Part shown: one piece after another, positions 19,078 through 63,813 of the stretch
Layout: each line of letters opens with the position of its first letter
Position numbering within the stretch: position 1 is the stretch's first letter
Source of the DNA: Haliotis cracherodii
Taxonomy: Eukaryota
Assembly (NCBI RefSeq): GCF_022045235.1
Contig: NW_027266273.1
Coordinates: 25,978,001-26,042,000 of the forward strand
DNA: 64,000 nt
Reading direction: 5' to 3'
Made by a program: the position numbers and the translations under genes
The notes under the pieces: generated by a model
The model's database searches: none
The model's input: the letters and a program-made list of their open reading frames with translations, nothing else
Told to the model about the DNA's origin: nothing

Positions 19078-19136
19078 CTTAATGTTTTGAAAAATCTTTT
19101 AATTATCACAGTGTCACCACCTCCTCCATTATTTTG

Positions 19137-31544: not shown

Positions 31545-31712
31545 GGGGCGGTCGGGTAGCCCAGTGGTTAAAGCGTTCGCTCGTCACGCCGAAGACCCGG
31601 GTTCGAATTCCGACATGGGTACAATGTGTGAAGCCCATTTCTGGTGTCCCCCGCCGTGATATTGCTGGAATATTGCTAAAAGCGGCGTAAGACCATACTC
31701 ACTCACCCACTC
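31545..31712 (+). mobile_element. SINE family 1 copy
   Basis: A/B boxes, ACTC tail. Confidence 0.9.
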
Positions 31713-37382: not shown

Positions 37383-37967
37383 CTGTATGTGTTTGTGGAT
37401 ATATCGCGCTATCAGCACTGGTTCGCACACCAAAACTGATTATCAGTACATTTTCAAGAGTAACAAAAACTCTTACTATTTTTGAGGGAAGGATGTATGA
37501 ATATATCAGAAACATTTATGTTGCATTTGTCTTGTGATCCTGTGAACTGACATCTACAGGACACAACGAAGTCATAGATAACCTATTAAAACCTATTTTG
37601 CATGTCATATATGAAAGTATATTGTAATCCTATGTAAATCAGATCATGTTCCTTGAAAAAAAACAATCAGAAATTATTTCCTACTTCCTAGCTCGATTCT
37701 GTTTTAATAGAAATAAACATAATCGTTTACATCTGTCATGCTATTGAAAGGAAATTTTATTTTCAGTCGAAAATACATGAGACACACGTACTGCTAAACT
37801 GACGGGATATGGCCAAAGTGTTACAGGTATAGCTAATACGTTGGCAGTATCGCAGTCATTGCGCTACCAATAAATACAATAAACAATGATCAACTGAACA
37901 AAGAAGCACTCATAGTGACACCACTAACATGCATTTTTATATCCTTCGTTACTACATATGAGTATAT

Positions 37968-40900
37968 TTAATTGTCAGGCACATGTATTCTGTCATATAT
38001 CCTGTCAATAGGCCTCCTGTCATACTGTGGCAGCGTGGTGGTGTCATAATTGTTTTCTTCCTGGGGTCCAGATGCTGCGTTAGATGCAGACAGATGGCTG
38101 TACACGGCCGTGCTGTCTGACGGGACAACTTTACCTCCATTGCCCACTGCTCGACACAGAATGTCATATTCACCATCCTGCCTTTCACTCATGCCACTGT
38201 TTCCACCGTCAGCTTCTGTAGGACATACCAGCTGCACATCTGCCAGTTGCGGTTCTTCTACTTTAGCAGGATCCGAGTGCTGTCTGTGATACATAGCACT
38301 CTCAGTTCTCACTGCGTACTTGATTGGTTTCTTGTTGCTGAATACAGAAACAAACCTTCTCTTATAATATACAGAGCTGGGTAGATAGAGAGAATAGGAA
38401 TGACCTGATGGGGTGAGGATTTTGGGTGCATGAGATTTTTCAGATCGATACTCGCTGTTTTTAACATAAGTAATATGTCATTTGATTTGATTAATAAAGA
38501 AATCTCACCGTTTGATGATAAAACAGCCTGAGATTATGACCACAGCAGCAAGAGCCACTATCACACATACCACAGAAGCGATGATTGGAACTGAGAACAC
38601 AAATAAACATGCATGGTTATGTTCATGTGAAACTATTATTAAGCGTCAACCAACGTCTTTATGTAAAACAAGAATATGACTATATGAATAAATTTGCAAC
38701 ACCATATTTACTATTTTATTATTAAGTAATTTCATAGAAATGTAATATAGCATGAAATGTTTGTTCATAATCATTGATTAAATACTGTTGTCAGTAATTC
38801 ACACTACCTAAACTGTGATTACACGATGATAAAGCGCGCAATGTACCATTACACAGTTTTACAGTCATGTGGATTACCTTTTGTGTTTGATCCCAGGGTT
38901 GTGGTTTGAATCTGTGGTGTTGATGTAGTAGATCCTGTGTGAATACAACGTTCAAGTACAACTATATATACTGCCACCCATGTGCGTTACTATAGAAACA
39001 TGAACAAGGTCATGATACATGAAAGAGATTCAAGATTTATGGACATCAACTCTCAAATCTCTAAATAAGAGGTTCCTAGGCTACTTCTTGCGCCTTCATG
39101 AGGGGAAAGTGTGAGTAAGAGATTGGTTTAACGTCGCGTTGAACAGTAGTCCATTTATATCACGGTGTATAAGCTTCATGTCGGACGAAAGCCAGAAGCG
39201 ATGCAGGTCTAAGACCTTCACCATTTCGGTGTAACCCACGAGCGCATGTATGATGCTCACAAACATAGAAACATAATCGAGGCGAAACGAGATTCGAACC
39301 TACGATCATAGGTTTCTGGCGTGCCCAAGGGACGCAACTCTGCAGAGCGAATTGCGGCGCCTTAGACTAGGCCACCCGTGCCCCCACTAGGAGTGTGAAG
39401 GGCAAGAATATACCATCGATAGTTGTGTTTAAAGAATAAAAAAGGGGAAATATCTTTATCGTATGTCTCTATAGCTGTCCACGGCCGTGCAGCAACAAAT
39501 AGGTAGACTTGTACTTGTCAAGGATAAAATAGGTAAATGGTAATCCATGTTTACAAAAATATATTACTGATATATTCTTACATGCCTTGGAATAATTTAG
39601 CATTTACCCGACTGAAATACCGTTTCGCGAACATTGAGGCGTTATTGTGTATATAAATACAAAACACATATCGCTAAGTAATATTTGTTTCTGCCTATCA
39701 ATGTACATTTTACATAAAAGACATAACACCGGTTGGATATGGAGGAACTACAATTGTATACATGATATGTACCTTGCGTGGAAGCATCCGTGGTTTTATT
39801 TCGACAAGGTACGTACCAATCAGAACCTGTCAATGTAAGATACAAATTATGCAGAAAGCGCGAAAATCTGTTTTAAATACACATATCTTATTTCTCATAA
39901 ATAGTACCATAAACTTACATCAGAAGTGTTACCCATTTTACATAAGTAACTAGTCAAGTCGAGCTGTGTAACGTAACGCCAGCCGAAAAACATGTCAAGA
40001 TATCAATGTGTTAACCGTGCCTTTTGTCTCATCTTTCACATTTGACAAGATGCATATATCACTGATCGTGTCCAACCCTCTTAAACATGAGAGTTGATGA
40101 CAAGGTTATCCTCATCATATTTGAGCTTGGAGTATATTTATGCGAACACTTTGAGTCCATGGCAGACTGTTTACACAGAAGGGCACACCAATCGACTCAC
40201 TGCCATACGCCCTTGCCTGTATACTAGTATTTATGATGCCAATAGATACACTCTGGCATAGATACTTACTGGTACTTGTGTTCCATGTGCAGACATAATA
40301 GTTGGAGTCACTACAGTTGGCGACCTGGAATGACTCATTGAAAGCTGTCTGGCAGGTACCTGTTAGGTAAAGAATATTTTTCAGTGGATGTTCCTCCATT
40401 ATATATGTTTATAACAATTGGATGTTTTCAACAATAATTAATCATTGTCAGTTGAATGCCAATCAGTTTCGCGATTCTGTCTGTGTGGCAATCGAAATTG
40501 TAAAACTGTAGCTCATGTCACAAACTTGATGTGAGGGAGAGTAAGGTTCAGTAAAAGTAGTGACGGGTGATCAAGGTTCACAACATTACCATTTTTGTTT
40601 ATCCATATCTTGGTATGTTCAGCCTTAGCCTTCTTCAACACATTGCTGCCGATGGATGTAATTAAATCTTTTAAAGAGAATATCTCGGCGCCCTTGTTGA
40701 TGCAGTCTGTCGCCGCTGCCGACCAATTGAGAGCAGCACAGGAAGATTCAAACGTTAAGTTGTCTGAGGAAAAACAATTATGTAATTAGTTTGACATAAT
40801 TGCAGCTTAAAAAGTAGTTCATTGTTAACAAAATCTTAACAAATATAAACAAAAGTTACAAACAATATTTGTTGTCAATACAATTCTTTATCATGCATTT

Positions 40901-42525
40901 GGATATGATTATATACAAAATAAACTTCAACAGAAACTATGCTAAAAATCTACAAAACCGCTGTTAGAAGTGAAAGAATACACGCTGATCAAGTCACTAA
41001 AATAGCGTATTGCAAAACGAACAGTCTCGATTTACGAGTGAAATGAAAAAATACAGTTTATAAAGAAACATTTTCAAGAGAATGACAATAATAACAAAAG
41101 TTAAATATCACATTTGTGCGGTGAAATATAAAGTCCTATGTTCACTGCAATGAAAATATCGCTTTTCTGAACTTGAGAAAACACAGTCTTTCACACTGAA
41201 GTATATGATAAATATATTACACAAAGATTAGAATATGTGATAACAAAATCATATCAAAGGCTTAGTTAGATCCGCAATTCTTTGTGCATGATATATATTT
41301 TACAGGTGGTGTACGGTGTAATGTCCAGATGCAATATGCTCTCTAATAACTTTACAATAGGACAATAACACAATTTTTCACAACAGATAGTGAAAGTATT
41401 ACCCTTGTTGTAATTTGGACTTGTCGTCGTGTATTTTGTAGTCTTTGTTGAAGATCCTGTAATGTGAAATCGATTGTGCCTGTAACTACAATATATCACA
41501 CATATATATCATATATATATACATTTTAATTTGAAGCTTACATGATATACGGCTTTTCCATTAGATGAGAGGTCACGGGATCACCAAGGATCATATTCAA
41601 AACTATGTAATATCCTATATTGAAAAGTATGTGTTTATAAGAAGCAATGGATTCTGATTTGGATAAGGAATGCAAATCTGCACAGCGAGTTGTGACTCCA
41701 CTTGACCCCAAGTACATCATTATAGTGTAGCAGGGCGTGGAGTCATCCCACAGATGACATCCTTACCTTGTCAGCTTGCTGACGGGGTTAACCTCTTTGA
41801 TCATGTGGACAAGGCGTCCGACCTCTGATCAGAAGGTCCGTGGTTCGAATCCCATCACGGGACTCGGAAATTTTATGGCCGCTACAATAGCATGGGATCT
41901 TTTTAGTTACGTGAAATACATATTTTACCCTCATGATTAGAATATGTTTTGTTAAGTCATACCCATGGCTCAGTTAGTTTATTCACAGTTTCAGAGACTC
42001 ATACACTTTTCATTGCTATTTTGCCGTTCACGCACAATAGAATCTGTTTCGTCAGATAATCGAGACTGGTTATTCTCTGGCGTTGATGTTTTATATAATT
42101 AAGGGTCAACACACTTTTAAACTAACATGAGTAGCCATGCCTATAAATTGTAGAAAATGGCACTCGAATATGCGATAATTATTCTGATATATCGTGTTTG
42201 ACAGAACAATATATGTATACACACTGTCAGGCTCAATAATCATTTTCTTAGAACAGAGTGAATTATCGAAATCGAATGTAACTCCAATACAAATAATCCA
42301 CATCAAAGTACAAAATCTAAGTAGGAAACCTAATAAATACACCTGCACCCGCACCTCTACAAGTGCTCATTCATACACAAGACGGGACAACCCACAATAT
42401 GAAAACTGTTTCTCACCTGTGATAGTATTGCTGGTAGTACTGTGTGTGTGGCTCGGGTTCATCAGTATCAATACCATTAACACAAAGCTACCAGGTTTTA
42501 CAGGGGAGACGAACACAGAAGCCAT
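37968..42525 (-). CDS. Gene D1: type I CTLD receptor with a long multi-tyrosine tail, ~329 aa
   Basis: Exons 42525-42417 (MASVFVSPVKPGSFVLMVLILM..); 41456-41403 (T-rich); 40763-40590 (..LNWSAAATDCINKGAEIFSL..KIWIN); 40359-40270 (GTCQ..ANCSDSNYYVC); 39826-39773 (SDWYVPCRNKTT..); 38934-38878 (T-rich); 38590-38509 (TM VPIIASVVCVIVALAAVVIISGCFIIKR); 38337-37968 (tail with YDIL, YSHL, YDRI). 990 nt in frame; AATAAA on the minus strand at 37756-37761. Confidence 0.88.
39110..39386 (-). mobile_element. SINE family 2 copy
   Basis: Similarity to the 18800 copy. Confidence 0.85.
41726..41886 (+). mobile_element. 161-bp solo-LTR-like insertion with an internal tRNA-like cassette
   Basis: ATAG|TGTAGC...GCTACA|ATAG (TG..CA ends, 4-bp TSD). 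The empty ATAG site is present in the duplicate (~54159-54162). Internal B box GGTTCGAATCCC. Confidence 0.8.
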
Positions 42526-44355
42526 CCTTCATACGCGACGCTGTGTAAATACTGACACTCCACATTCACGTGTACCGTACAGATATTGTGACTCAGTTTC
42601 CTGCTTCGTTGCTAATACCAGTTCATGACTGGCTATGACAATAAACATTCCAGCTGATAGGGCAGGCTAGCTTAGAACAAGTGAAGAAAGGTCCCTTAGC
42701 TTAGAAAAGTCCCTTATCTATGAGGAAACAACATGTTCTCTTGTATTTGATAGCAAGCAGATAATTTATTCGAGGTAAATGTTGCAGTGTCAACTGTATA
42801 CATGTGTTCACATAATTTCATAGTATTATTGTTATACTAAACACATCATTAATATGTCAATATTTATGGTTGGATGATGTGTGCATACATTTGTCCGAAA
42901 ACATAAACGGATAATGCATTAATGCAATATTATACAACGCAGCTTAACATTCCGCACCAGTCACCTCAGAGTGAAGTTGTTTACTTTTATCGCTATTTTG
43001 TGTTTACGCCCAATGGCAAGCCATTCTGTTCTGCCTGTCGAGAATAGTTATTCTCTGGCGTTGATTATTTCCTATATATACATGAATGTGTATATGTCAT
43101 GATAAAACAGACTGGAATACGTTGAGGTTTGCTCTTTAAATAAATGAAATAAGAAAAATATCAAAATAATACATGCTAATGTTCACCATGTATTGGTTCT
43201 CAAACATGCCCTGACGCTCTCCTGTCTTGTCGGTTTGTTGGTAACTTGTCATCCATATGTGTCCCTATCAAGTTGCGATCTTTCCCAACTTAGTAACGTG
43301 GATTCATAACTGATTTCATTACAGATCGAGAGATATTTTTAAACCAAAATATCCCCTGCTTAGTGAACAATACTGACTAATGTATGCAGAAGGGTGACAA
43401 GAGTTACCTCCCCCTGGATCAGTAATCGGTGTGTTTATTATTACCATACAAATTGTGTCATATTTCACTGGATAAACTTCACGATTAAATGTTAGTCGAT
43501 CGTCGTTGAAAATACAGAAATGATAATGTCTTCTGGTTAATGTGTAACTCGAAGAGAATGCTAAGGCTCATATCCCACTCGCCATTTCACGGAAGTATCG
43601 TATTGTACCGAGGCACCCGTATACCGGCTTGACTGACCTGGTTCAGGGACAGTTCACTGAAAACGGGAGTGTGTATTGACGCATGAGCATCACCCCAGCT
43701 CTATAACACCGTTAGATGACATGTCACATCGTATGATCGCCACTTATTCCAACACAAATAGTTCAGTTCCCTCAATCAGCTTATAATTAGTGAAGGTCTT
43801 GATCAATTACCAATGTGAAGCCTAACTGACATAGACTATGGGTGGTTTTAGTCAATTAAATTCGAGGTCTAGTTGATAGTACATAAGTCCATAAGGTCGG
43901 TTGTTCGATGCCCTGGCTGAGTCCTACCGGGGGAGTTAAAAGTAGTTGTTATGGTAGCCTGGCGCTCTGCTTTGAGGTAGAAAACAAGGACTGGTCGACT
44001 CGTAATCTGTCGTGGTTGGGCATTCATGATATACTGCAGCATACCATCTCAGTGCAACCACAGACCAATCACCACCGACAGACAGCTGTCTAATCCGTAT
44101 CAAATCAAATTAATACACATTGCATTACTACATACGGAGAACGGAAGTTGTGCCACAGTATGTTTCAATATTTTACCTCTCTAACAAGAACATAAGGCTG
44201 AGGTGGATGAGTTACTTCCCTTAGGCGTGTAAGGATCGTATGGTGGGATATCCATACCCATAAAAACGCGACATAAGATGGTGGGAGTGGACGTGTTTGT
44301 GAATCGCTCTCACTGGAAGTGTTTCCTGGTCGAGATTTCAACCGTACACTGAGCA

Positions 44356-45898
44356 TTGCAAAACATCGACAAGAGAAATACAATCTGTCACAAAATGAGT
44401 GACAAAAAGATAAGAAAAGGACTTCGTCAAAATGACTCTTGTGATTCGAATATAGGGACATTCCTAAGAGTGCCACGTCGATACACAAAGGGAAGCTTAG
44501 TGCGTGAGTCTTTATATACTTTGTTCACACCTAACCCCCTGTACCAGAATATGACGTATACTGTTGAAGGACGATACAAACAATACATTCGTCTGCAGGC
44601 ACAGCAACTTAAACAGGATGCAACAGCATAGATAAGGGTAGAAAAGGACGAAAGTGACATCAAAGTCAACATTGCATATCTGGAACTGAAAGTCAATGCA
44701 ATAGATGAAAGATCGCTTTACTGCACTTAAAGCCAATGCTATCTATATCAGTGATAGTCCTGACGAGTGGGAAAATGACCAGAAAACAATAGAAGCGGAC
44801 GTACAATCCCTCAAACAACAAATGGGTGAATTGAAAAGCATTGACGAAGAAGATTTGGAACTGAGAGAGTCACTTATCGACCAAATAGCTCGCTCTATGA
44901 GAGACACAGTGTTACATTTACAAACATCAAAGAGCTAAGTGGAGTCGACGCGGATGGTGGAACTTGGGAAGAAACTGAAAATGTGCTCAGAAGGTCATTC
45001 AGGATGAACTTTAATTTGAAAGTGATAAAAGGCACTTTAAACGTAAATCGGGAAGAAAAACCAACCACCCCGTCGGGGTGAAGATCCGCGACCCCGCCCT
45101 GGCATCGCCACGTTTATGTTCACCCGTTAGAGGGACGCTGTCACATGTTGTGGGAAAGAGTTAAAAGGGAAACCATTCCATATTGTAGAACAGTTCCTAG
45201 AAGAGATAGTCGCCTGCAGGAGAGACGTCCTGATGCGTCCTGAAGGTCGGAAAGGCTAGGCGTTGGGGGGAAATGTCAACTCGGTTGTTGACAAACTTTT
45301 CATAAATAATGCTCTTCAAACAGCTGATATACCGCCCCCTCTCAGACCGACAACCAAAACGAGGCCATCAAAGGAAAGTACGGGTGGACAAGCGCGGGAA
45401 CAGCATGGTGTTGTAACACGAGATATCTGATTTAGTTAACATGGTCAGTGAGATACAACTACAAGTTTGAGCTACCGACAATAAACCGGATGTGTTTGAA
45501 TGTGCGGGTATTGTAATTGACGCTGTCGGAAGCCCACGTGTTTGTGTTTGGTCAGACCGTGCAAGCATAAGCAGACACAGTGTCCGAAATACAAATGCCT
45601 GCCCGTGGCCGGTAACTTTTCTGTCGGGCTGCCGGAAATTTTCGTCCTCCTGCCCGACTACCTGGCAGATACTTTTAAGACTTACGTATTCAGTTTTATC
45701 ATAACTCCCTGTTGACTCCCAAGTAATTGTTTGCATTATTTCAACTGAATCAAGATGCGATTTGCCCGGTAAAAAAAACCGAAATTTTTCACTAGTTATA
45801 ATATCTGAATGTGCGCAAGTAACTTTGAAGATGGGCAGGCCACATACCTGGGTCACCTGCCTGACTGTGGTACTGGATTTTAATATTTTTTCAAACAC
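44356..45898. pseudogene. Decayed retroelement-like coding remnants (coiled-coil ORF pieces on +, pol-like piece on -)
   Basis: Broken ORFs 44356-44938 (+; heptad-rich, with a stop and a frameshift) and 45368-45898 (-; ITIPAHSN..GLLSVA, loosely like the Gypsy post-protease region). Duplicated at 56616-58152. Identity uncertain. Confidence 0.3.
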
Positions 45899-47411
45899 TG
45901 AGCAGACAACGGAGAGTAGAAGAGTTGTGTATGCTGGATATAATAATGATATTCAGATGACTGCTCAGCAAATTGGAGAGGATATTTTAAGTACTAAGAT
46001 TTATACATTCTGAACTTATCTTCAGTAGTTTGTGAGGGATTAACAACTGACCACAGAGATATGAACACGTGTCACGTTGATATTAGGACTAAGTTATTAT
46101 AATCATGCATCCCTGAAATGAGTGTGTGTGATATGTTATCTCAATTTGATAAAATACGTTTTGCAAGACTGAGTTTTCCGATGCTAATAAGATCCATCTA
46201 CTTATGAAAATTCATGTGAAACATCAACTCATGATAACCCACTGTGCATGCTTAGTTTAGATGTTGGTGGTCTTAGAAGGCGCTCACAGTATCCTGATTT
46301 GCCAGACCATATATGGGTAGTGTGGTCAGGTCAAAAGTTAGTTTTGCTAGTAAATAATTATTGTGCGATATTGATCTTACTTACTCACCCCTGTTGTTAC
46401 CGAGCTGGACGTGTGGCTAGGGGATTATACTATATACCCCCTTTTCTAGTAATTCGTGAATTACCAATCTCACCGGGATTGCATTGTTTTAGGTCAAACA
46501 CCTTTCTATAGTTGTGAGTCAAGTTACTCTTTAGGTGAAGTACGTGTTGAATGTTGTGAGTCTAGATACTCTGTAGGTCCAGTTCCTGTATATTCAAGAA
46601 GTCCAGGATGTCCTTGCTCAGCCCAAACGACTTTAGACTGAGATTTTAATCAAGCATGTTCGTCTGATCTTAATTTTCCAAGAGGCATATTTTAGGGACA
46701 GGCTCTCCGTTACCATTTCACCCTTCCTTACCAAGACGAGATTACTCACTCCTTACTTAACGAGTAGGAGTAGCTGACTCTACCTACAGTGTGTAGCAGC
46801 TCATTAAGTAGTAGGTGAAGCCAGGCAGTCACACTGGTCACACCTAACTGATCTGTGTCATTATTGGGTCGTCTGACAAATGGGATGTCTGACAAGTGAA
46901 CCGATATTTGAGTTAATTTACTCCCAGGTGTTAATTGGATACAGCCGGTTTAATTGGCCGTCTATGCGGCTTTCTGGTCAGAGTGTTTGGTAATAGCTGT
47001 TACACAGTTGCTCAGCTACTCAGCTTGTATAGTTGCTCATGACTTAGATTAATTAGTGATCTTGGTCAGTGTCATTTGGGTCTTGAGCCTTTAGGTTTCA
47101 CTACCTGTTTTCGTGTACACATTTTGAAACTGATCGTCAGCGCTATCCTAAAAAGTACTATTATGTCAACCCTAAATATCATAAACTTCAAAAACTGTTT
47201 CTGCTCCTAAAGTCTCAGTGTTAAGAAACCTCGGCGGATTTGTCTCCTGTGTAGTTAAATGGTGTATAATATCATACGCATACTCATGCGAGTGTCCTCT
47301 GTTAATCAGATGACTTTCTTGCATTTACGTCCTTGTACCACTGTAAGTGGTTAGTTATGGAATAAACTATGTCGATGTCGATGTCGATGTCAATGCCTAT
47401 GTCTCTCTTTA

Positions 47412-47677
47412 GATGGTCCAGTCGTCAAAAGTGCCGCAATTTGCTGTGCAGAGTCGCGCCCCGTGGGAACGCCAGAAACTTATGATTGTGGTTTCGAATC
47501 CCGTTTCGCCCCGATTATGCTTTTAGGTTTGTCAACACCATACCCGTGCTCGTGGGTTTCACCGAAGTGGTAAAGGCCTGAGACCTGCATCACTTCGGGC
47601 TTTCCTCCCACATTAAGCTGCGATATAACTGGAATACTGTTAAAAGCGGCGTTAAACTCAGCTCACTCACTCACTCT
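47412..47677 (+). mobile_element. SINE family 2 copy (duplicate at ~59666-59930)
   Basis: GGTCCAGTCGTC..GTTTCGAATCCC..AAAAGCGGCGTTAAACTCAGCTCACTCACTC. Confidence 0.85.
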
Positions 47678-48563
47678 TTAGATACCTTTAGCTGATAAGA
47701 ATAAGACATTTACCACGTTCTCTATTATTGCTTTATTCTTATAGTGACACCCTGGTCTCAGGAGCACAGCTAAGTGACAATAATTTAGTGAGTAGAAACC
47801 CCAGGCCCATTGTTCACAATATTCTATGTTTGTATAGATGTATTATGAATTAACATGTCGAATACCCACACAAACAGGGTTAAACAAAGCTAACGAATTG
47901 ATTGCGAGAACAACAGTCACGTGTATTTGATAACCTAAACTCAGTCACAGTATTTGAATTAACGTCATTCGGAGCACAGTTTCGTTCCTTCGAACTGGCG
48001 AAAGAAAAACATTTCCCTGTATGACAACATGTTCTAATTAAATAACCTTTGAATCTCCACAGATATCGAACAAAGTTGAACATTAAACTGAAACAGGAAA
48101 TAATGACTAACAGTTTGGCCGGAATACATGACTACTAAATTACGTTTCGTTTTATATTTTAGATAACTCAACAATCAAATATTCATTTATTTTGTGTTAA
48201 TGTTACTTTCATCACTTGTGGAATTTACATGTTCTCATATATAGTCCTCAGTCATAGATACTGAGGACTGAGAAATAATTACAAAACAAATCACAACTAC
48301 TTTAAACTTAATATTTTATTGAATAGCGTTCAGAGCAAGATATTAAAGAAAAAAAAAGGATATGTAAACCTATAGAAACGTATCATGCATGTGTGTACCG
48401 GTGGAAAAGAATGAACACGGCTAGATCAAAGATTATCCGAAGAACAGTAGACACGAACTGTGCAGATCCTGCAATTGCATCCTAAGCTTGTGTGGGTATT
48501 GGCGATGGTCTCTGCAGAATTCATACCTTACAGTTCTGATTAGCAGTTTTAGGATTAGTGTAA

Positions 48564-48834
48564 TTAATCATTCTGTTCCGACTGGTTTGCTGGTGCCCTT
48601 TCGTTGTTTTCAGGTTCATTAAGTGCAGCATAATTGTTCATTTCTGAAGCATCTCGAGCGTGTAGGTGAGAGTAATAATCCACCTCCGGTCGTCCTTCAC
48701 TTGCGACATTCACCTGATTTCCTGATGACCCTATTTTCCTCCTGAAAATATAGTCAGTCCATCAATGGTCAAATGGATTTTCAATTGATGACGACAGACT
48801 AGATAGCGCGTGCGTTTATGTGTTATTGTGTGAG

Positions 48835-48866
<32 letters not shown>

Positions 48867-51800
48867 TGCATGCGTGCGTGCGTGCGTGTGTGTGTGTAAA
48901 TCGAATCTGGACCCGACAATCCAATGATTGATATTATGAGCAAAGGTCGGGGGACGATGAACAACTTTCAACAAACTCACCGAGCCTGACCAACCCAATC
49001 AATTAAGTCGCCTTTTTCAACAGCCACAGGTTGCTGGGTAACCGATCCTAACCTGGAATCCCCCACAGCGTGCTGGGTTAGCTGACTAATATTGTTCATT
49101 GGAGTGTGTCTAAGAGCAGGATATTTCTACCAGTCATCACTGACTTTCATATTAGTGTAATCACTAGTTTGCCCTTTACTCTTAATGGAAACTGTTTCGG
49201 TTGATAGTCTGGACTGATCATTCTCTGGCGTTGGCATTTTGAATTAAACTTTATATTGAATTCGTCTGACAGCGATCTTGCCACAATTGTAACACCCACT
49301 TACTAGGAAGAACAACTTGCACGAATCATCATCTTGTAAACAATACTAGTTACTGTTCCTACCTTTGGATTAAGTTACAGCCAAGAACAATGCTCACAGC
49401 AGCAAGAGCCGCTATCGTACATACGATCGAGGCGATGATTGGAACTGTGAGCAAAAATGAATATATATATCATTAAAGATAGCATGCATCGATTACATCT
49501 CGACGGAAAATATGTTGGTTTTTTTCAGGATCTGATTGGTATGGCAGTAGTTCTGTAAGTCCTCCCAATACAATGAAACTCTTCATTGGAGGCTTTCAAA
49601 TGTTCGATTTACCCTAATCAAGAATGGGAGTTAAGTCTGACGTAAGGCAAATTAAAATGCTGTGAAAACTGTTTTCAATCTACGAGTCCAAAATAAAATC
49701 TTTTCAACAGCATACATCATACATATTGTGCATTCACTCAACATATTCACATAATAAGCGCGGAATACATACGATGTCAAACGTGCAAATGTAAACACGT
49801 AGATTTATGTTTGTTACACCGAGTTGGTCATGCGTGGCATATGTGGTGAGCAACATACCATTTTAACATCCAAATCAATGCATAACTAAATCATGATAAT
49901 ACACACAATGACCAATCATACACCTTTACAGTCATAAATAATACCGTTTGTGTTTGCTCCAGGGCCTTTGGTTAGACTCGGTGGTGTAGATCCTGTGTGT
50001 ATTACAACGTACAAGTAAATATATACTAATATGCTGCCATATGCCCGTCCTGTCACATGTGCGTTTAATTATATTGGCAAAAATAGGGTCTTGACCGTCA
50101 TGAATAGGTTGCAGTACAAGGAGACGCAATGGCTGTGGGTATCAACGTCTGTAATCTCTACCCATGTATCTATGACGTTTCGATGCTACTTCTTGCCCCT
50201 TCTTCGGGTGGTATATATGTACTTGACCAGCAGAAAGTAGGTAATTTGTTATCCATGTTTGAGATGGATAAATTACTGATATATTCTTTCGCGACTTACG
50301 TTATTGAAAATTGTTTCACGAAAATTGAGGCGTAAATGTTCGTACGTCTGTTAATGTATATTTATCAAGACGGAACAAATTATCGCCTATTAATTTTCGT
50401 TACTGCCTATCAATGTAGATGTCACCACGGAGAGTGAGTCACTGAGTGGGATGGGTTTAACGCCGCTTTGAACAATATTCCAGCTGCATCAGGGCGACTC
50501 AGCTTCACGTGGGAGATAAGCACAAGTGACGCAGGTTTCAAAAGTTTACCACTTTGGTGTAACCCACGAGCACGGGGATGGTGCTGACAAACCTAAAAGG
50601 TAATCGTGGCGAACCGGAATTCGAACCCACAATCATTTGCGTCTGGCGTGCTCACGGGACGCAACAGCGAATTACGGCGTCTCAGACAAATGGGCCTACA
50701 GTGGTCCCGTTACGTAGAGGACAACACACAGGTCGATATTCTTGAGTGAGTATGGTTTTACGCCGCTTTTAGCAATATTCCAGCTACATTACGGTGGGGG
50801 ACACCAGAAATGGGCTTCACACGTTGTGCCCATGTCGAGAATCGAACCCGGGTCTTCGAAGAGACGAGCGAACGCTTTAACCACGAGGTTACTCGACCGC
50901 CCCTAGGTCGATATTAACAACTGTATACGTGATTGTAGGACTATTCCCTTGAAGGTTATATGTTCAAGTGAGATTATGACTATATGTCAGTGAATAAATT
51001 TGCTGCTCAATATTTACCATTTTATAAGTAAGTAATTTAAGTACTAAGTAAATAATGTTGAGAGTAATTCACACTACCTAAACTATGATTACACGATGAT
51101 AAAGCGCACAATGTACCATTACACAGTTTTACAGTAATGTGGATTACCTTTTGTGTTTGATCCCTGGGTTGTGGTTTGAATCTGTGGTGTTGATGTTGTA
51201 GATCCTGTGTGGATACAGATACAGATAGGTAGACGTAGACTTGTACTTGTCAAGGATAAAATAGGTAAATGGTAATCCATGTTTACAAAAATATATTACT
51301 GATATATTCTTACATGCCTTGGAATAATTTTAGCATTTACCCGATTGAAATACTGTTTCGCGAACAGTGAGGCGTTAATGTGTATATAAATGCAAAATAC
51401 ATATAGCTAAGTAATATTTGTTTCTGCCTATCAATGTACATTTTACATAAAAGACATAACACCGGATGGATATGGTGGAACTACAATTGTATACATGATA
51501 TGTACCTTGCGTGGAAGCATCCGTGGTTTCATTTCTTAAACATGAGAGTTGATGACAAGGTTATCCTCATCATATTTCAGCTTGGAGTATATTTATGCGA
51601 ACACTTTGAGTCCATGGCAGGCTGTTTACACAGAAGGGCACACTAATCGACTCACTGCCATACGCCCTTGCCTGTGTAGTAGTATTTATGATGTCAATTG
51701 ATACACTCTGGCATCGATACTTACTGGTACTTGTGTTCCATGTGCAGACATAATAGTTGGAGTCACTACAGTTGGCGACCTGGAATGACTCATTGACAGC

Positions 51801-54797
51801 TGTCTGGCAGGTACCTGTTAGGTTAAGAATATTATTCAGTGGATGTTCATCCATTATAATATATGTTTATAACAATTGGATGTTTTCAACAATAATTAAT
51901 CATTGTCAGTTGAATGCCAATCAGTTTCGCGATTCTGTCTGTGGGGCAATCAACATTGTAAAACTGTAGCTCATGTCACAAGCTTGATGTGAGGGAGAGT
52001 AAGGTTCAGTAAAAGTAGTGACGGGTGATCAAGGTTCACAACATTACCATTTATGTTTATCCATATCTTGGTGTGTTCAGCAGTAACATTCTTCAACACA
52101 TTGCTGCCGCGTGATGTTTTTACATCTTCTAAAGAGAATATCGCCGCGCCCTTGTTGATGCAGTCTGTCGCCGCTGCCGACCAATTGAGAGCAGCACAGG
52201 AAGATTCAAACGTGAAGTTGTCTGAGGAAAAACAATTATGTAATTAGTTTGACATAATTGCAGCTTAAAAAGTAGTTCATTGTTAACAAAATCTTAACAA
52301 ATATAAACAAAAGTTACAAACAATATTTGTTGTCAATACAATTCTTTATCATGCATTTGGATATGATTATATACAAAATAATCTTCAACAGAAACTATGC
52401 TAAAAATCTACAAAACCGCTGTTAGAAGTGAAAGAATACACGCTGATCAAGTCACTAAAATAGCGTATTGCAAAACGAACAATCTCGATTTACGAGTGAA
52501 ATGAAAAAATACAGTTTATAAAGAAACATTTTCAAGAGAATGACAAAAATAACAAAAGTTAAATATCACATTTGTGCGGTGAAATATAAAGTGCTATGTT
52601 CACTGCAATGAAAATATCGCTTTACTGAACTTGAGAAAACACAGTCTTTCCCACTGAAGTATATGATAAATATATTACACAAAGATTAGAATATGTGATA
52701 ACAAAATCATATCAAAGGCTTAGTTAGATCAGCAATTCTTTGTGCATGATATATATTTTACAGGTGGTGTACGGTGTAATGTCCAGATGCAATATGCACT
52801 CTAATAACTTTACAATAGGACAATAACTCAATTTTTCTCAACAGATAGTGAAAGTATTACCCTTGTTGTAATTTGGACTTGTCGTCGTGTATTTTGTAGT
52901 CTTTGTTGAAGATCCTGTAATGTGAAATCGATTGTGCCTGTAACTACAATATATCACACATATATATCCAATATATTTGTTTTAATTTGAGGTTTACATG
53001 ATATACGGCTTTTCAATTAGGTGGGAGGTCGGTCACATGACCGCGAAATTGACGTTCATAAGTGTATGGACAAAACCGTGTTTTTGAAATGACGGAAAAA
53101 CTGACGGACTGCTTCCACATTCCCAGGGAAGGCCCTGGGAATTTCCTAGCACGAATACATACAGAAGCATTCTCACTGATCATTTATACCTTTAATCTTG
53201 AACTCGGCGGTTTAGCATACATTAAGAAAGGTCAGATAGCTTGACTGCATGATCGTTCACTGTTAGCCTTGCTATGACCCATGCTAGTGAACAAAACGAA
53301 GAAATGCACATCCAAACTATCGTAGTATGGAACCAATCCTTGACCACGCTGACAGTGACGGTCCACAGCAATCTATGAAGTGAACTCAGTGTATATTTGG
53401 ATCATCTTTAATCGCCCTTCAATGATCGGCCAATTGATCACTGATGACTGAAACATGTAACCGCCACATGTTCATTAAGAACTTCCGAAATCGCTCCCAT
53501 CACGTGTATTGTGTCGGCGTACGACGCGCTGTCATTGTGACTGACTGACTTACTGAGGTAGTTCTTAACAGACCTTTCTTATCTAAAGTTGATATTATTT
53601 GAATACATGTGTTGTGTCAGATGTTTCTGAAGAGCAAGTTATGCATACATACGCTCATGTCACCTTTGTTTTGAGGAACCATTTTATTCTGCGATACAGT
53701 TGGTTGTTGTATGGCTGTCAGTGTAAACATTATGTCACACGTACTTAATAAAATTATGTTTAAATCCAGGCCTAGATCCTTGGAGGTAAACAAAATGTGA
53801 AAACCTTTTATAACAATTGACTTTCATTTAGTATTAACCTTCATTGAATGAGGGCCAAACATCCTTAATTTACTAAAGATATACAGTTTCCTTTAGTCTG
53901 CCACATGTAATGCCGCTAATGACAGAAGCTGCTCCTTTTCACAATTTTGCGCCATATTGACGACCGTCGTCGACGTTTTGACATTTTAAAAATAATAACG
54001 ACAATCACGGGAATAGTGCTGATGGACCAAGGATCATATTCAAAACAATGTAATATCCTATATTGTTTATAAGTAGCAATGGATTCTGATTTGGATAAGG
54101 AATGCAAATCTGCACAGCGAGTTGTGACTCCACTTGGCCCCCAGTACATCGAGCATTTATAGGATGGGATCTTTTTGGTTACGTGAAATACATATTTTAC
54201 CCTCATGATTAGAATATGTTTTGTTAAGTCATACCCATGGCTCAATTAGTTTATTCACAGTTTCAGAGACTCATACACTTTTCATTGCTATTTTGTCGTT
54301 CACGCACAATGGAATCTGTTTCGTCGGATAATCGAGACTGGTTATTCTCTGGCGTTAATGTTTTATATAATTAAGGGTCAACACGCTTTTAAACTAACAT
54401 GAGTAGCCATGCCTATAAATTGTAGAAAATGGCACTTGAATATGCGATAATTATTCTGATATATCGTGTTTGACAGAACAATACATGTATACACACTGTC
54501 AGGCTCAATAATCATTTTCTTAAAACAGAGTGAATTATCGAAATCGAACGTAACTCCAATACAAATAATCCACATCAAATTACAAAATCTAAGTAGGAAA
54601 CCTAATAAATACACCTGCACCCGCACCTCTACAAGTGCTCATTCATACACAAGACGGGACAACCAACAATATGAAAACTGTTTCTCACCTGTGATAGTAT
54701 TGCTGGTAGTGCTGTGTGTGTGGCTCGGGTTCATCAGTATCAATACCATTAACACAAAGCTACCAGGTTTTACAGGGGAGACGAACACAGAAGCCAT
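48564..54797 (-). CDS. Gene D2: type I CTLD receptor with an ITAM-like tail, ~263 aa
   Basis: Exons 54797-54689, 52914-52861, 52221-52048, 51814-51725, 51204-51148, 49992-49945, 49444-49363 (TM VPIIASIVCTIAALAAVSIVLGCNLIQR) and 48741-48564 (RKIGSSGNQVNVASEGRPEVDYYSHLHARDASEMNNYAALNEPENNERAPANQSEQND*). 792 nt in frame; AATAAA on the minus strand at 48315-48320. Confidence 0.85.
48890..49060 (-). mobile_element. SINE-like family 3, degenerate (duplicate at ~61145-61315)
   Basis: Partial match to family 3; adjacent (GT)n/(GCGT)n microsatellite. Confidence 0.6.
50430..50708 (-). mobile_element. SINE family 2, degenerate (duplicate at ~62685-62962)
   Basis: Similarity to the 18800 copy. Confidence 0.75.
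50744..50903 (-). mobile_element. SINE family 1 copy (duplicate at ~62998-63157)
   Basis: Reverse family 1 consensus. Confidence 0.85.
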
Positions 54798-60817: not shown

Positions 60818-61088
60818 TTAATCATTCTGTTCCGACTGGTTTGCTGGTGCCCTTTCGTTGTTTTCAGGTTCATTAAGTGCAGCATAATTGTTCATTTCTG
60901 AAGCATCTCGAGCGTGTAGGTGAGAGTAATAATCCACCTCCGGTCGTCCTTCACTTGCGACATTCACCTGATTTCCTGATGACCCTATTTTCCTCCTGAA
61001 AATATAGTCAGTCCATCAATGGTCAAATGGATTTTCAATTGATGACGACAGACTAGATAGCGCGTGCGTTTATGTGTTATTGTGTGAG

Positions 61089-61120
<32 letters not shown>

Positions 61121-63813
61121 TGCATGCGTGCGTGCGTGCGTGTGTGTGTGTAAATCGAATCTGGACCCGACAATCCAATGATTGATATTATGAGCAAAGG
61201 TCGGGGGACGATGAACAACTTTCAACAAACTCACCGAGCCTGACCAACCCAATCAATTAAGTCGCCTTTTTCAACAGCCACAGGTTGCTGGGTAACCGAT
61301 CCTAACCTGGAATCCCCCACAGCGTGCTGGGTTAGCTGACTAATATTGTTCATTGGAGTGTGTCTAAGAGCAGGATATTTCTACCAGTCATCACTGACTT
61401 TCATATTAGTGTAATCACTAGTTTGCCCTTTACTCTTAATGGAAACTGTTTCGGTTGATAGTCTGGACTGATCATTCTCTGGCGTTGGCATTTTGAATTA
61501 AACTTTATATTGAATTCGTCTGACAGCGATCTTGCCACAATTGTAACACCCACTTACTAGGAAGAACAACTTGCACGAATCATCATCTTGTAAACAATAC
61601 TAGTTACTGTTCCTACCTTTGGATTAAGTTACAGCCAAGAACAATGCTCACAGCAGCAAGAGCCGCTATCGTACATACGATCGAGGCGATGATTGGAACT
61701 GTGAGCAAAAATGAATATATATATCATTAAAGATAGCATGCATCGATTACATCTCGACGGAAAATATGTTGGTTTTTTTCAGGATCTGATTGGTATGGCA
61801 GTAGTTCTGTAAGTCCTCCCAATACAATGAAACTCTTCATTGGAGGCTTTCAAATGTTCGATTTACCCTAATCAAGAATGGGAGTTAAGTCTGACGTAAG
61901 GCAAATTAAAATGCTGTGAAAACTGTTTTCAATCTACGAGTCCAAAATAAAATCTTTTCAACAGCATACATCATACATATTGTGCATTCACTCAACATAT
62001 TCACATAATAAGCGCGGAATACATACGATGTCAAACGTGCAAATGTAAACACGTAGATTTATGTTTGTTACACCGAGTTGGTCATGCGTGGCATATGTGG
62101 TGAGCAACATACCATTTTAACATCCAAATCAATGCATAACTAAATCATGATAATACACACAATGACCAATCATACACCTTTACAGTCATAAATAATACCG
62201 TTTGTGTTTGCTCCAGGGCCTTTGGTTAGACTCGGTGGTGTAGATCCTGTGTGTATTACAACGTACAAGTACATATATACTAATATGCTGCCATATGCCC
62301 GTCCTGTCACATGTGCGTTTAATTATATTGGCAAAAATAGGGTCTTGACCGTCATGAATAGGTTGCAGTACAAGGAGACGCAATGGCTGTGGGTATCAAC
62401 GTCTGTAATCTCTACCCATGTATCTATGACGTTTCGATGCTACTTCTTACCCCTTCTTCGGGTGGTATATATGTACTTGACCAGCAGAAAGTAGGTAATT
62501 TGTTATCCATGTTTGAGATTGATAAATTACTGATATATTCTTTCGCGACTTACGTTATTGAAAATTGTTTCACGAAAATTGAGGCGTAAATGTTCGTACG
62601 TCTGTTAATGTATATTTATCAAGACGGAACAAATTATCGCCTATTAATTTTCGTTACTGCCTATCAATGTAGATGTCACCACGGAGAGTGAGTCACTGAG
62701 TGGGATGGGTTTAACGCCGCTTTGAACAATATTCCAGCTGCATCAGGGCGACTCAGCTTCACGTGGGAGATAAGCACAAGTGACGCAGGTTTCAAAAGTT
62801 TACCACTTTGGTGTAACCCACGAGCACGGGGATGGTGCTGACAAACCTAAAAGGTAATCGTGGCGAACCGGAATTCGAACCCACAATCATTTGCGTCTGG
62901 CGTGCTCACGGGACGCAACAGCGAATTACGGCGTCTCAGACAAATGGGCCTACAGTGGTCCCGTTACGTAGAGGACAACACACAGGTCGATATTCTTGAG
63001 TGAGTATGGTTTTACGCCGCTTTTAGCAATATTCCAGCTACATTACGGTGGGGGACACCAGAAATGGGCTTCACACGTTGTGCCCATGTCGAGAATCGAA
63101 CCCGGGTCTTCGAAGAGACGAGCGAACGCTTTAACCACGAGGTTACTCGACCGCCCCTAGGTCGATATTAACAACTGTATACGTGATTGTAGGACTATTC
63201 CCTTGAAGGTTATATGTTCAAGTGAGATTATGACTATATGTCAGTGAATAAATTTGCTGCTCAATATTTACCATTTTATAAGTAAGTAATTTAAGTACTA
63301 AGTAAATAATGTTGTCAGTAATTCACACTACCTAAACTATGATTACACGATGATAAAGCGCACAATGTACCATTACACAGTTTTACAGTAATGTGGATTA
63401 CCTTTTGTGTTTGATCCCTGGGTTGTGGTTTGAATCTGTGGTGTTGATGTTGTAGATCCTGTGTGGATACAGATACAGATAGGTAGACGTAGACTTGTAC
63501 TTGTCAAGGATAAAATAGGTAAATGGTAATCCATGTTTACAAAAATATATTACTGATATATTCTTACATGCCTTGGAATAATTTTAGCATTTACCCGATT
63601 GAAATACTGTTTCGCGAACAGTGAGGCGTTAATGTGTATATAAATACAAAATACATATAGCTAAGTAATATTTGTTTCTGCCTATCAATGTACATTTTAC
63701 ATAAAAGACATAACACCGGATGGATATGGTGGAACTACAATTGTATACATGATATGTACCTTGCGTGGAAGCATCCGTGGTTTCATTTCGACAAGGTACG
63801 TACCAATCAGAAC
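60818..63813 (-). CDS. Gene D3: third CTLD receptor copy, 3' part (ITAM-like tail; 5' exons beyond the right edge)
   Basis: Exons 63813-63760 (SDWYVPCRNETT.., intact), 63458-63402, 62246-62199, 61698-61617 (TM) and 60995-60818 (tail as in D2). Confidence 0.82.

Follow-up and report, generated by a model that had tools for sequence, protein, structure and literature searches.

Within a 64,000-nucleotide stretch of the Haliotis cracherodii genome (the window; contig NW_027266273.1, positions 25,978,001 to 26,042,000), the genes D1 (37968–42525) and D2 (48564–54797) encode nearly the same ectodomain on different transmembrane (TM) segments and cytoplasmic tails, raising the question of how one head came to stand on two ends and whether the two form a functional pair. 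Both genes lie on the minus strand with AG/GT exon borders, and the window also holds the 3' part of D3 (60818–63813, minus strand), the remainder of which lies past the window end. D1, D2 and D3 form a small cluster of single-pass type I membrane receptors, in which a signal peptide and Thr-rich cassette exons accompany a compact divergent CTLD-like head, followed by a TM exon and a cytoplasmic tail, and the family is restricted to abalones (Haliotis). The D1 model is identical to RefSeq XP_071103263.1 (329 aa) and XP_071103266.1 is D3, RefSeq naming both "uncharacterized proteins" of H. cracherodii on the same contig. The features of D1 are as follows.

42417–42525, minus strand: exon 1, start codon at 42525, signal peptide (36 aa + 1 nt), GT donor, N-terminus of XP_071103263.1
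41403–41456, minus strand: exon 2, "first stalk exon", 54-nt Thr/Ser-rich cassette, phase 1-1, AG/GT, present in RefSeq D1 models
40590–40763, minus strand: exon 3, N-terminal half of the CTLD-like head, 58 codons, AG/GT, RNA contigs stopping exactly at its borders
40270–40359, minus strand: exon 4, C-terminal half of the CTLD-like head, 30 codons, AG/GT, e3–e4 and e4–e5 RNA joints
39773–39826, minus strand: exon 5, 54-nt stalk cassette with one Cys, AG/GT, e4–e5 and e5–e6 joints
38878–38934, minus strand: exon 6, 57-nt Thr-rich stalk exon, AG/GT, e5–e6 joint in runs X1, X2 and X3
38671–38690, minus strand: breakpoint in intron 6, from BLAST limits and a five-way intron 6 alignment
38509–38590, minus strand: exon 7, L-type TM, 82 nt, phase 1 in and phase 2 out, e7–e8 joint 38337|38509 in runs X1 and X2
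37968–38337, minus strand: exon 8, long (L) cytoplasmic tail, 122 aa + stop, RNA contig of X1

D1 and D2 are real, spliced, transcribed genes. Among the RNA contigs of runs X1, X2 and X3, matched over the D1 gene body, the e1–e2, e3–e4, e4–e5 and e5–e6 joints and the D1-specific e7–e8 joint were spliced, an X1 contig spanning 37812–38275 differed from D1 at 2 of 464 nt, and one spliced X1 contig carried D2-specific bases at 13 of the 13 listed e3 sites. Exon 1 was joined to exon 2 and also to exon 3; exon 2 was left out in an e1–e3 joint of run X3, as it is in the H. rufescens RefSeq ortholog, and exon 5 is absent from the D1 RefSeq isoform X2. The corresponding features of D2, with those of D3 in the window, are listed below.

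54689–54797, minus strand: D2 exon 1, signal peptide, same peptide as D1 (sequence)
52861–52914, minus strand: D2 exon 2, same peptide as D1 (sequence)
52048–52221, minus strand: D2 exon 3, N-terminal half of the head, D3-like, spliced RNA contig of run X1
51725–51814, minus strand: D2 exon 4, C-terminal half of the head (sequence)
51506–51535, minus strand: D2 exon 5 remnant, acceptor and first 24 nt gone
51148–51204, minus strand: D2 exon 6, 57-nt stalk exon, young copy (sequence)
50971–50985, minus strand: breakpoint in D2 intron 6, end of the young head copy (D3 equivalent 63225–63239)
50210–50425, minus strand: remnant of old short-tail intron 5, 67–80% identity to D1 39502–39713
49945–49992, minus strand: e6', older stalk exon relic, 48 nt, phase 1-1, open, AG/GT intact, outside the RefSeq model
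49363–49444, minus strand: D2 exon 7, S-type TM, 82 nt, phases as in D1 exon 7, 19/28 aa as in D1
48564–48741, minus strand: D2 exon 8, short (S) cytoplasmic tail, 58 aa + stop, YSHL-x10-YAAL (sequence)
60818–60995, 61617–61698 and 62199–62246, minus strand: D3 tail, TM and e6' (sequence)
63402–63458 and 63760–63813, minus strand: D3 stalk exons e6 and e5 (sequence)

The earlier note, made from the letters of this locus, had described near-identical ectodomains, and most of its description held. The signal exons encode the same 36 aa and the first stalk exons the same peptide, with 84 of 84 nt identical including the flanks. The introns are indeed near-identical, though at 96–97%, slightly below the 97–98% given; non-coding identity was 96.3% (40079–41574), 96.3% (39503–39802), 97.3% (41887–43200) and 94.7% (38779–38947), and the pooled synonymous difference in e1, e2, e4, e5 and e6 was about 1%. 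The shared ectodomain is near-identical overall but not uniform, as e3 is only 82% identical in protein. Compared with D2/D3, D1 e3 showed 82–86% protein identity between flanking introns of 96–98%, with differences at 8–10 of 57 residues, a pS of 0.11, a pN of 0.07–0.09 and about 86% identity in its most divergent 100 nt, and these residue differences suggest that the ligands of D1 and D2/D3 may differ. Similarity breaks after the 57-nt exon at 38671 (D1) and 50971 (D2), at most 10 nt from the positions 38680 and 50980 proposed earlier; above the breakpoint D1 intron 6 matches D2/D3, and below it only the paralog D4. The TM exons (38509–38590 and 49363–49444) share 19 of 28 residues and the tails measure 122 aa in D1 and 58 aa in D2, as had been described. 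The two tails do align only around YSHL...NNY, but that alignment was no better than chance in a profile test, which gave no significant homology between the L and S tails, and their DNA cannot be aligned.

The heads appear young and the tails old, because head DNA is 96–97% identical whereas pS in the TM exon reaches 0.34 between D1 and D2/D3 (0.14 between D1 and D4) and the tails are unalignable in DNA; a young ectodomain on an old TM and tail is thus supported by these divergences. D1 intron 6 is colinear with that of the outgroup paralog D4 over its whole length, breakpoint included, and in D2/D3 e6' and the old intron-5 piece sit between the new head and the gene's own TM exon. In genome-wide searches (1.18 Gb), e6' matched only e6 exons of this locus and the old intron-5 piece had no match outside it. 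The relics in D2/D3 and the D4 colinearity point to the short-tail gene as the recipient of the graft and the long-tail head as its source, and the earlier proposal that an ectodomain was grafted onto an older tail is therefore supported and now oriented, from L head to S gene. The S gene is evidently a chimera. An older S paralog took up, within its old intron 5, an approximately 6-kb copy of the L gene that starts 2.4 kb before exon 1 and stops 207 nt inside intron 6; the S gene's old last stalk exon evidently persists as a relic before the S-type TM exon. Past the D2 breakpoint lie about 65 nt of unique sequence and then SINE copies at 50743–50904 and 50436–50665.

Later exchanges were laid over this graft. 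The alignments mark D2 as a mosaic with a D1-like 5' part and a D3-like 3' part, which arose later, and very recently, through tandem duplication and exchange, and the identity of the D1 and D2 signal and e2 exons reads as a separate later exchange, distinct from the older graft. The duplication is recorded in the following block.

43670–52280, no strand assigned: tandem duplicate block of very recent origin, differing by about 0.2% from 55940–64540, containing the D1 upstream region and e3–e8 of the short-tail gene

Such a block could also be in part an assembly artefact, D2 representing a D3 allele, or a haplotype assembled twice, and the real locus containing a single L gene and a single S gene: identity between the 8.6-kb block and its copy is 99.8% (0.23% difference over 7.9 kb, 43666–51392 versus the copy), and no separate RefSeq protein cluster was found for D2. 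However, a 277-bp deletion that neither D1 nor D3 shows has removed the e5 acceptor and the first 24 nt of e5 from D2, which also has a D1-like promoter, e1 and e2 and lacks the triplicated e1–e2 unit of D3. The D2-specific e3 bases in the RNA contig, though possibly those of an allele, and the two S genes of H. rufescens also make an artefact unlikely, and the contrast between L and S survives through D3 regardless.

The L tail (122 aa) contains four conserved distal tyrosine motifs, YDxL, YSHL, YDTT and YxR/K-I/V, represented in D1 by GEYDIL, VYSHL, NYDTT and IYDRI. Judging by its relatives, it is the family's usual tail and D1 carries one: full-length relatives include D5 (47%, E 1.6e-24), further loci on C10 and, with weaker similarity, on C78, and the motif order is retained in L019, L020 and D5. 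The S tail (58 aa, core Y-[Y/F]-x-x-L-x10-YA[A/T]L) has two genome copies only, D2 and D3, with orthologs in H. rufescens and H. rubra, and each tail type is present in at least three abalone species. D1 and its H. rufescens ortholog share 93% identity in the L tail and 79% in the head; the S tails of H. cracherodii and H. rubra are only 43% identical. In trees of three Haliotis species, heads clustered by species and tails by type, with support of 98/99 for the S-tail clade and of 98/97 for the L and S heads of H. rubra as sisters. Likeness of heads within species together with conservation of tail types between species indicates that heads are repeatedly exchanged and both tails kept, and this head-by-species, tail-by-type pattern is, on the trees, the signature of vertebrate paired receptors. 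Monophyly of L or of S heads was rejected in the head tree, and a D1+D3 group in the tail tree.

Exchange of this kind need not imply function. L and S may be old tandem paralogs between which unequal crossing-over or gene conversion copied the similar heads and stopped where homology ends, in intron 6, leaving a neutral mosaic and no functional pair. The locus is rich in exchanges, including the D1/D3 mosaic of D2, a 95% patch in the tail exon of D1 and D4 with an unusually similar e3, and the triplicated unit of D3; moreover, e3 differs at synonymous and non-synonymous sites, which looks like different ancestry, not selection. Nevertheless, both tail types and their motifs are kept in at least three species with heads diverging faster than tails, the S-upstream, L-downstream arrangement recurs in H. 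rubra with models splicing one head to either tail, and the approximately 6 kb of near-identical upstream DNA common to D1 and D2 favours their co-regulation. We regard the neutral mosaic as rather unlikely.

The same H. rubra models suggest a second alternative, one complex transcription unit in which the head exons of the upstream S unit could be spliced with either the S cassette or the downstream L TM and tail, the latter through read-through, and the pair would consist mainly of isoforms. In H. rubra LOC124257045, identical e1 and e3 are joined to the S cassette (isoform X7) or the L cassette (isoform X2), isoform X3 combines S-unit head exons with the L TM and tail, and the first exon of the L unit itself is modelled without e3 (isoform X6); in H. 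cracherodii, D1 directly follows the S genes (D2/D3), with all of them in the same orientation. However, the H. rubra isoform models are predictions, H. cracherodii D1 has its own complete head and promoter, D1 and D3 are separate genes in RefSeq, and no read-through joint was seen in the RNA contigs over the D1 gene body, making a single unit very unlikely.

Considering these results, we propose a reading that combines an abalone cluster, a grafted S chimera, retained tails and one head with two signalling tails, and that, on sequence grounds, we hold to be reasonably probable. One ligand-binding head may be displayed on two different tyrosine-phosphorylation tails. A tandem-SH2 Syk-type kinase is the probable partner of the S tail, through the ITAM-like motif of that tail, and another set of SH2 proteins probably binds the L tail. 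With different SH2 partners, ligand binding would, if this reading is true, give two different outputs, which need not be activating and inhibitory. Opposing activating and inhibitory tails, as the earlier note had it, were not supported, since D1-type tails contain no strict ITIM or ITSM and neither D1 nor D2 has a charged TM residue. Both H. cracherodii and H. rufescens have the full ITAM-like S-tail motif YxxL-x10-YxxL, and the ITAM pattern arose in 0.1–0.15% of shuffles of the S tails from these two species; H. rubra has YFSHL at the first tyrosine position, and the double YxxL is thus not conserved across the genus.

For the head, the family profile matched the NKR-P1B CTLD best among solved structures (E 0.034), and type II antifreeze protein next. 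The head falls below the Pfam Lectin_C threshold, structure prediction gave no confident fold, no EPN/QPD or WND sugar-binding motif was found in it, and it lacks about 25–30 residues of the CTLD middle; its assignment as a CTLD is weak. The myeloid and NK C-type lectin-like receptor families of NKR-P1B and of the hemITAM receptors Dectin-1 and CLEC-2 likewise carry tail tyrosine motifs and include activating and inhibitory relatives, but they are type II with N-terminal tails, whereas the abalone receptors are type I with a shortened CTLD. Oyster CgIgR, a mollusc type I receptor, was shown experimentally to bind tandem-SH2 CgSyk through its own cytoplasmic ITAM (PMC6994640), indicating that the proposed ITAM–Syk effector route exists in molluscs; unlike D1–D3, to which it has no sequence relation, it has five Ig domains and no two-tail pair.

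CEACAM1/CEACAM3-type receptors (PMC2832619, PMC5112662) are likewise type I membrane proteins in a tandem cluster, with heads near-identical within species, tails conserved by type, one short tail with its own ITAM-like motif and one longer multi-tyrosine tail. Their head, however, is an Ig domain rather than a compact CTLD-like one, and they differ from the abalone receptors in that the abalone long tail lacks a strict ITIM/ITSM and the abalone family is Haliotis-only. In Siglec-11/Siglec-16, KIR, Ly49, PILR and SIRP (PMC5701461, PMC2768862, PMC2211832), ectodomain DNA is likewise kept alike by conversion or unequal crossover, similarity stops abruptly before the TM exon, and the signalling ends of the members differ. 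The activating member there usually has a charged TM residue and a borrowed ITAM adaptor such as DAP12 or FcR-gamma (PMC5701461, PMC2768862, PMC2211832), whereas the abalone TMs are uncharged and the candidate activating motif lies in the receptor's own tail. Recombination between members of a tandem array can also homogenise heads as a neutral side effect.

The sequence compared comprised the window, which holds no N runs, and the 48 kb past its end, where positions marked ext continue the window numbering. Self-comparison revealed a tandem organization with a period of ~12.26 kb, and every gene treated here is encoded on the minus strand. D1, the long-tail (L) receptor gene, and D2, the short-tail (S) gene, stand on the same strand 12 kb apart, accompanied by a second short-tail gene, D3, and by the further paralogs D4 to D6. 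Exon e1 encodes the signal, e2, e5 and e6 the stalk, e3 and e4 the CTLD-like head, e7 the transmembrane (TM) segment and e8 the tail.

Exons and genes of the receptor cluster (ext, continued numbering past the window end)
42417-42525, minus strand: D1 e1, AG/GT borders
41403-41456, minus strand: D1 e2, AG/GT borders
40590-40763, minus strand: D1 e3, AG/GT borders
40270-40359, minus strand: D1 e4, AG/GT borders
39773-39826, minus strand: D1 e5, AG/GT borders
38878-38934, minus strand: D1 e6, AG/GT borders
38509-38590, minus strand: D1 e7 (TM), AG/GT borders
37968-38337, minus strand: D1 e8 (tail), AG/GT borders
54689-54797, 52861-52914, 52048-52221 and 51725-51814, minus strand: D2 e1, e2, e3 and e4
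51148-51204, 49363-49444 and 48564-48741, minus strand: D2 e6, e7 and e8
Tail 60818-60995, head to about ext 71300, minus strand: D3, RefSeq XP_071103266.1
G000:C10:26043564-26049267 (ext 65564-71267): triplicated e1-intron 1-e2 unit of D3, loci L005-L007, L009, L010 and L013
ext about 80900-87300, minus strand: D4
ext about 92000-95500, minus strand: D5
ext about 106800-110900, minus strand: D6

The eight-exon model of D1 equals RefSeq XP_071103263.1 (329 aa), and e5 is skipped in the D1 RefSeq isoform X2. The e5 acceptor of D2 was lost through a 277-bp deletion, and the short tail of D3 is the same as that of D2. RNA contigs from four runs were placed on the D1 stretch 37400-43300; this evidence is at the contig level, from which expression level, tissue and full-length linkage are not derivable. 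The spliced joints e1-e2, e1-e3, e3-e4, e4-e5 and e5-e6 match the predicted exon borders exactly, and the D1-specific e7-e8 joint (38337 to 38509) was found in RNA runs X1 and X2. One contig of run X1 spans the tail and 3′ UTR of D1, differing at 2 of 464 nt, and a spliced contig from the same run has the D2 bases in e3 at 13 of 13 listed sites, including the three distinguishing D2 from D3; a D1 tail and a D2-type head were therefore transcribed in one run.

The 54-57-nt phase-1 exons e2, e5 and e6 act as cassettes: e2 is missing from the H. rufescens RefSeq orthologs, and e5 is joined to the TM exon in one contig from a related species. At the 5′ end of D3, the e1-intron 1-e2 unit stands three times in tandem with a period of about 2.13 kb, the copy closest to e3 being without e2. 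An e2-e2 joint ('goes back 48') occurs in RNA contigs from two runs, and e1 is spliced directly to e3 in one RNA contig. Together with the triplication, these joints indicate that stalk length upstream of the head seems to be variable.

The signal and first-stalk (e2) peptides of D1 and D2 were confirmed as identical, as were the 19 of 28 identical TM residues and the tail lengths of 122 and 58 aa reported in the earlier note. Head DNA is 96-97% identical between the two genes, and introns that had been put at ~97-98% are indeed nearly identical, the measured value being 96-97%. Similarity drops abruptly before the TM exon, the end reported near 38680/50980 being located at 38671/50971, in intron 6, beyond which the TM and tail parts are dissimilar. 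The TM exons of D1 and D2 can be regarded as homologous because they have the same 82-nt length, the same phases and 65% identity. Between D1 and D2/D3, the TM exons differ at pS 0.34 and pN 0.24, and the tail exons lack any DNA match, together forming an old layer. The tail alignment around YSHL..NNY described in the earlier note was seen, but it lacks statistical support: an HMM built from nine long tails scored the four real short tails like shuffled ones, ranking them 31st to 863rd among about 2000 shuffles. Homology of the L and S tail exons is thus not claimed.

Protein identity between D1 and D2 is 97% in e4, 94% in e6 and 82% in e3, and in its worst 100 nt e3 is 86% identical, compared with 96-98% in the flanks. 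The stretch concerned (D1 40595-40687, D2 52053-52145; D4 e3 lies at ext 85164-85337) is far more diverged than the flanking introns. Positive selection as the sole cause of this divergence was rejected, since synonymous as well as non-synonymous differences between D1 and D2/D3 are raised (pS 0.11, pN 0.07-0.09) and D1 agrees with D4 at 12 of the 12 e3 sites where it differs from D2/D3. The e3 pattern looks like patchy conversion among paralogs. Alternative e3 residues (e.g., KKAKAE/KNATAE and TSIG/TSRG) are also shuffled among L and S genes across species.

Intron 6 carries the evidence for how the two genes came to share a head. That of D1 (287 nt) aligns end to end with intron 6 of D4, across the point where D2/D3 depart; the D1 arrangement is therefore ancestral and contiguous. 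Intron 6 of D2/D3 is 1.7 kb long, and its first 207 nt, which match D1, are followed by four parts.

Parts of D2 intron 6 beyond the D1-like 207 nt (minus-strand gene)
About 65 nt: unique sequence
Two copies: SINE
50210-50425: homologous to D1 intron 5, 67-80% identical
49945-49992: e6′, a leftover older stalk exon of 48 nt, AG and GT kept, open phase-1 frame, ~75% like e6

A 551-nt stretch of this intron matched only the present locus in a whole-genome search and is therefore not a dispersed repeat. The intron-5 piece and e6′ indicate that the short-tail gene was once a complete older paralog. A copy of the L gene (promoter and e1-e6) was joined into the old intron 5 of the short-tail gene, which displaced the old short-tail head and left its last stalk exon as the relic e6′. 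This layout supports a head graft with the short-tail gene as the recipient, so that the earlier claim of an ectodomain grafted onto an older tail is supported, now with a direction. Conversion had been offered as one route; an in-register gene conversion does not fit, because the new e6 and the old e6′ occur in tandem, and the graft was instead either a segmental duplication or a non-homologous unequal exchange.

Two SINE-like copies flank the graft junction in D2/D3. SINE-like repeats of two kinds lie at 39106-39385, 47414-47679, 50436-50665 and 50743-50904, and others at 10073-10324, 18798-19078, 29541-29702 and 31545-31705. They reach contig depths in the hundred-thousands in all four of the four runs and have dozens of 86% matches on many chromosomes.

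Younger exchanges are superimposed on the graft. The block 43666-51392 and its copy are 0.23% different, and within this very young block lie the sequence upstream of D1 and exons e3 to e8 of the short-tail gene; its duplication explains the 99.5-100% similarity of D2 and D3 between the tail and e3. An intermediate layer is formed by 38700-40760, over which D1 is 3-4% different from D2/D3, and D1 and D3 are 3-8% different up to 44886 (ext 72624), where homology stops. Upward from 40827, D2 sides with D1 against D3, and D2 also has the 1-kb insertion in intron 1 that is typical of D3. Derivation of D2 from a single unequal crossover is too simple, since this insertion sits within the D1-like 5′ part. 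The D1-like 5′ bases and D3-type insertion show that D2 is a recent D1/D3 mosaic, and the perfect identity of its signal and e2 exons with those of D1 stems from this late exchange.

The same contrast between heads and tails was found across Haliotis species, using RefSeq L forms from H. rufescens, H. rubra and H. asinina and S forms from H. rufescens (two genes) and H. rubra; the full-length proteins compared were database entries, and exons were searched singly. The e3-e4 heads of L and S forms are 90% identical in H. cracherodii, 87% in H. rufescens (74% for the second short-tail gene) and 94% in H. rubra, and those of the same tail type are 66-84% identical between species. Between H. cracherodii and H. 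rufescens, long tails are 93% and short tails 86-88% identical, and L and S tails are 26-33% identical. Maximum likelihood trees of heads and tails were built from ten proteins only. In the head tree, the H. rubra L and S forms are sisters (98/97), though their e1 and e3 are possibly the same physical exons, and grouping by tail type was rejected (AU test). In the TM and tail tree, the short-tail clade received 98/99, D1 and D3 as one group was rejected, and a group of the H. rubra long and short forms had p 0.023. The comparison of the two trees indicates that both tail types predate the species split and that heads have been exchanged since. Heads evolve in concert within species, and tails are orthologous between species.

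In H. rubra, e1 and e3 are identical in L and S forms. The modelled isoforms of LOC124257045 join one e1 and e3 to the S cassette (RefSeq isoform X7) or to the L cassette (X2), and in the model of isoform X3, the head exons of the short-tail unit are joined to the L TM and tail.

Searches of Pfam with single exons or with full-length D1, D3, D4 and orthologs gave no match to Lectin_C (PF00059); sub-threshold matches occurred in the paralogous proteins P0021 and P0022 alone (E 0.16-0.19, 13 bits; cut-off 22.6). The two top matches of the family profile in PDB are CTLDs, namely NKR-P1B (E 0.034) and type II antifreeze protein (E 0.15), the former in two colinear stretches that span the conserved positions of Cys, Trp and (Y/F)xC. 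Language-model neighbours of the head in the ESM atlas are all Lectin_C, at low scores of 0.79-0.83, and AlphaFold2 models from family alignments of 10 and 15 sequences had pLDDT values of 40 and 38 and were unusable. The middle (long-loop) part of a CTLD is missing in D1-D4, D5 orthologs having extra residues there, and the Ca2+/sugar-binding motifs (EPN or QPD, plus WND) are absent from the D1-D3 heads. Taking the profile and neighbour matches together, the head is quite probably a compact, divergent CTLD. Three D5 orthologs (P0019-P0021) have ~20 more mid-head residues and two more cysteines, an insert also missing from the shorter H. cracherodii D5 isoform. The H. asinina protein P0022 has two tandem heads and a truncated long-type tail.

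The D1-type long tail is the normal tail of the family. D5 is a full-length relative of the D1 tail (47%, E 1.6e-24), further long-tail relatives occur elsewhere on the same contig (E 7e-5 and 3e-4) and weaker ones in a cluster on another chromosome (C78), and the relatives have the motif order G[D/E]YDxL ... YSHL ... YD[T/I]T ... Yx[R/K][I/V/M] in common. At least five tail exons on C78 (G000:C78:7985214-8102636; loci L022-L025 and L030) keep the distal motif order of D1 at 27-29% identity, as GDYDxL, VYSHL, YDTT and LYNKM. The D4 and D6 tails are truncated past the membrane-proximal part. In the 1.18 Gb genome the short tail occurs exactly twice, in D2 and D3. The D1 tail, searched against 1.8 billion cluster representatives, found abalone proteins only, plus one chance match, and a family-profile search returned 13 clusters, all from Haliotis and all named 'uncharacterized protein'. 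The 5′ half of the D1 tail exon (38186-38354) is also 95% identical to D4 ext 80942-81110 (G000:C10:26058942-26059110), the two genes being 74-87% alike outside this patch. The D4 frame ends five codons past the patch, so that the tail is truncated and lacks the distal tyrosine motifs, and the H. rufescens protein P0003 has the same truncated form.

The D1-type long tail has seven tyrosines, three of them within Yxx[L/I]. With ITIM defined as [S/I/V/L]xYxx[I/V/L], none of the D1-type long tails examined in four species has a strict ITIM or ITSM, position -2 of the three motifs being G, A/T or R/K; only the H. rubra and H. asinina orthologs of D5 have S[V/A]YSHL, which fits ITIM. Two YxxL motifs of the D1 tail lie 22 residues apart. 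The short tail of D2/D3, D-Y-YSHL-x10-YAAL, fits the extended but not the strict definition of an ITAM (two Yxx[L/I], 6-12 or 6-8 residues apart, respectively, with upstream acidic residues). D2/D3 share the arrangement YxxL-x10-YxxL with the two short-tail genes of H. rufescens, and shuffling recreates it in only 0.1-0.15% of cases. In H. rubra the corresponding tail reads YFSHL...YATL, the motif Y being replaced by F with a Y one residue earlier, and once this species is included YATL is the sole invariant part of the short-tail motif. No charged residue was found in the D1/D2-type TM segments. The two tails are likely to be different phosphotyrosine docking tails; that they oppose each other in signalling is only a possibility, and the activating/inhibitory reading of the pair is unproven.

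Paired receptors, in which one binding domain is borne on two signalling tails and maintained by gene conversion, typify innate immune regulation in vertebrates, and are usually attributed to an arms race with pathogens exploiting inhibitory receptors. The abalone locus is built like a paired-receptor locus, and we do not assert that it is one. The earlier note had read D1 and D2 as paired activating/inhibitory receptors. Of the features that define such receptors, linkage, like heads, unlike tails and concerted head evolution are present here, a strict ITIM is absent from the D1-type tail, and the ITAM-like motif of the short tail varies among species. The nearest analogue is CEACAM1/CEACAM3, in which both members are type I, the activating member bears an ITAM-like motif of its own, and the N-domains show concerted evolution (PMC2832619, PMC5112662). 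A second analogue is Siglec-11/16, with a gene-conversion boundary ahead of the TM exon (PMC5701461). ITAM-Syk signalling is present in molluscs, as illustrated by the oyster CgIgR (PMC6994640). A literature search found no paper on abalone receptors of this kind. Distinctive here are the physical graft relic and the head/tail incongruence across species.

It is rather unlikely, though conceivable, that the locus is a true abalone paired-receptor system, independent of the vertebrate ones. Such a system would carry a lectin-like head both on the short tail, whose ITAM-like motif would recruit Syk, and on the long regulatory tail with its several tyrosines, which might recruit an SHP2-type phosphatase given the 22-residue spacing of the two YxxL motifs in D1, with heads matched through recurrent recombination (in H. 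rubra, plus alternative 3′ cassettes) and the pair setting an activation threshold for a pathogen or self ligand. A vertebrate-type genomic signature, consisting of a young shared head, old tails of distinct type that are conserved between species, and head and tail trees that disagree, is encountered in a molluscan family that is restricted to one lineage and differs from the vertebrate receptors in fold and in tail vocabulary. The leftover stalk exon e6′ preserves a physical trace of the exon shuffling, which few such events leave behind. Should the two tails differ in signalling, the paired design would represent convergence and could be tested in an aquaculture and conservation species that is prone to infectious disease; otherwise the locus is still a clean case of domain grafting via segmental duplication.

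Elsewhere in the window, a single tRNA match lies at 7570-7641 on the plus strand (Rfam RF00005, 40.6 bits). Large tandem-repeat arrays at 1-2056, 2124-3199 and 25781-27170 match themselves at many offsets with 80-86% identity, and GC skew is extreme (0.6-0.8) over the first 4 kb.
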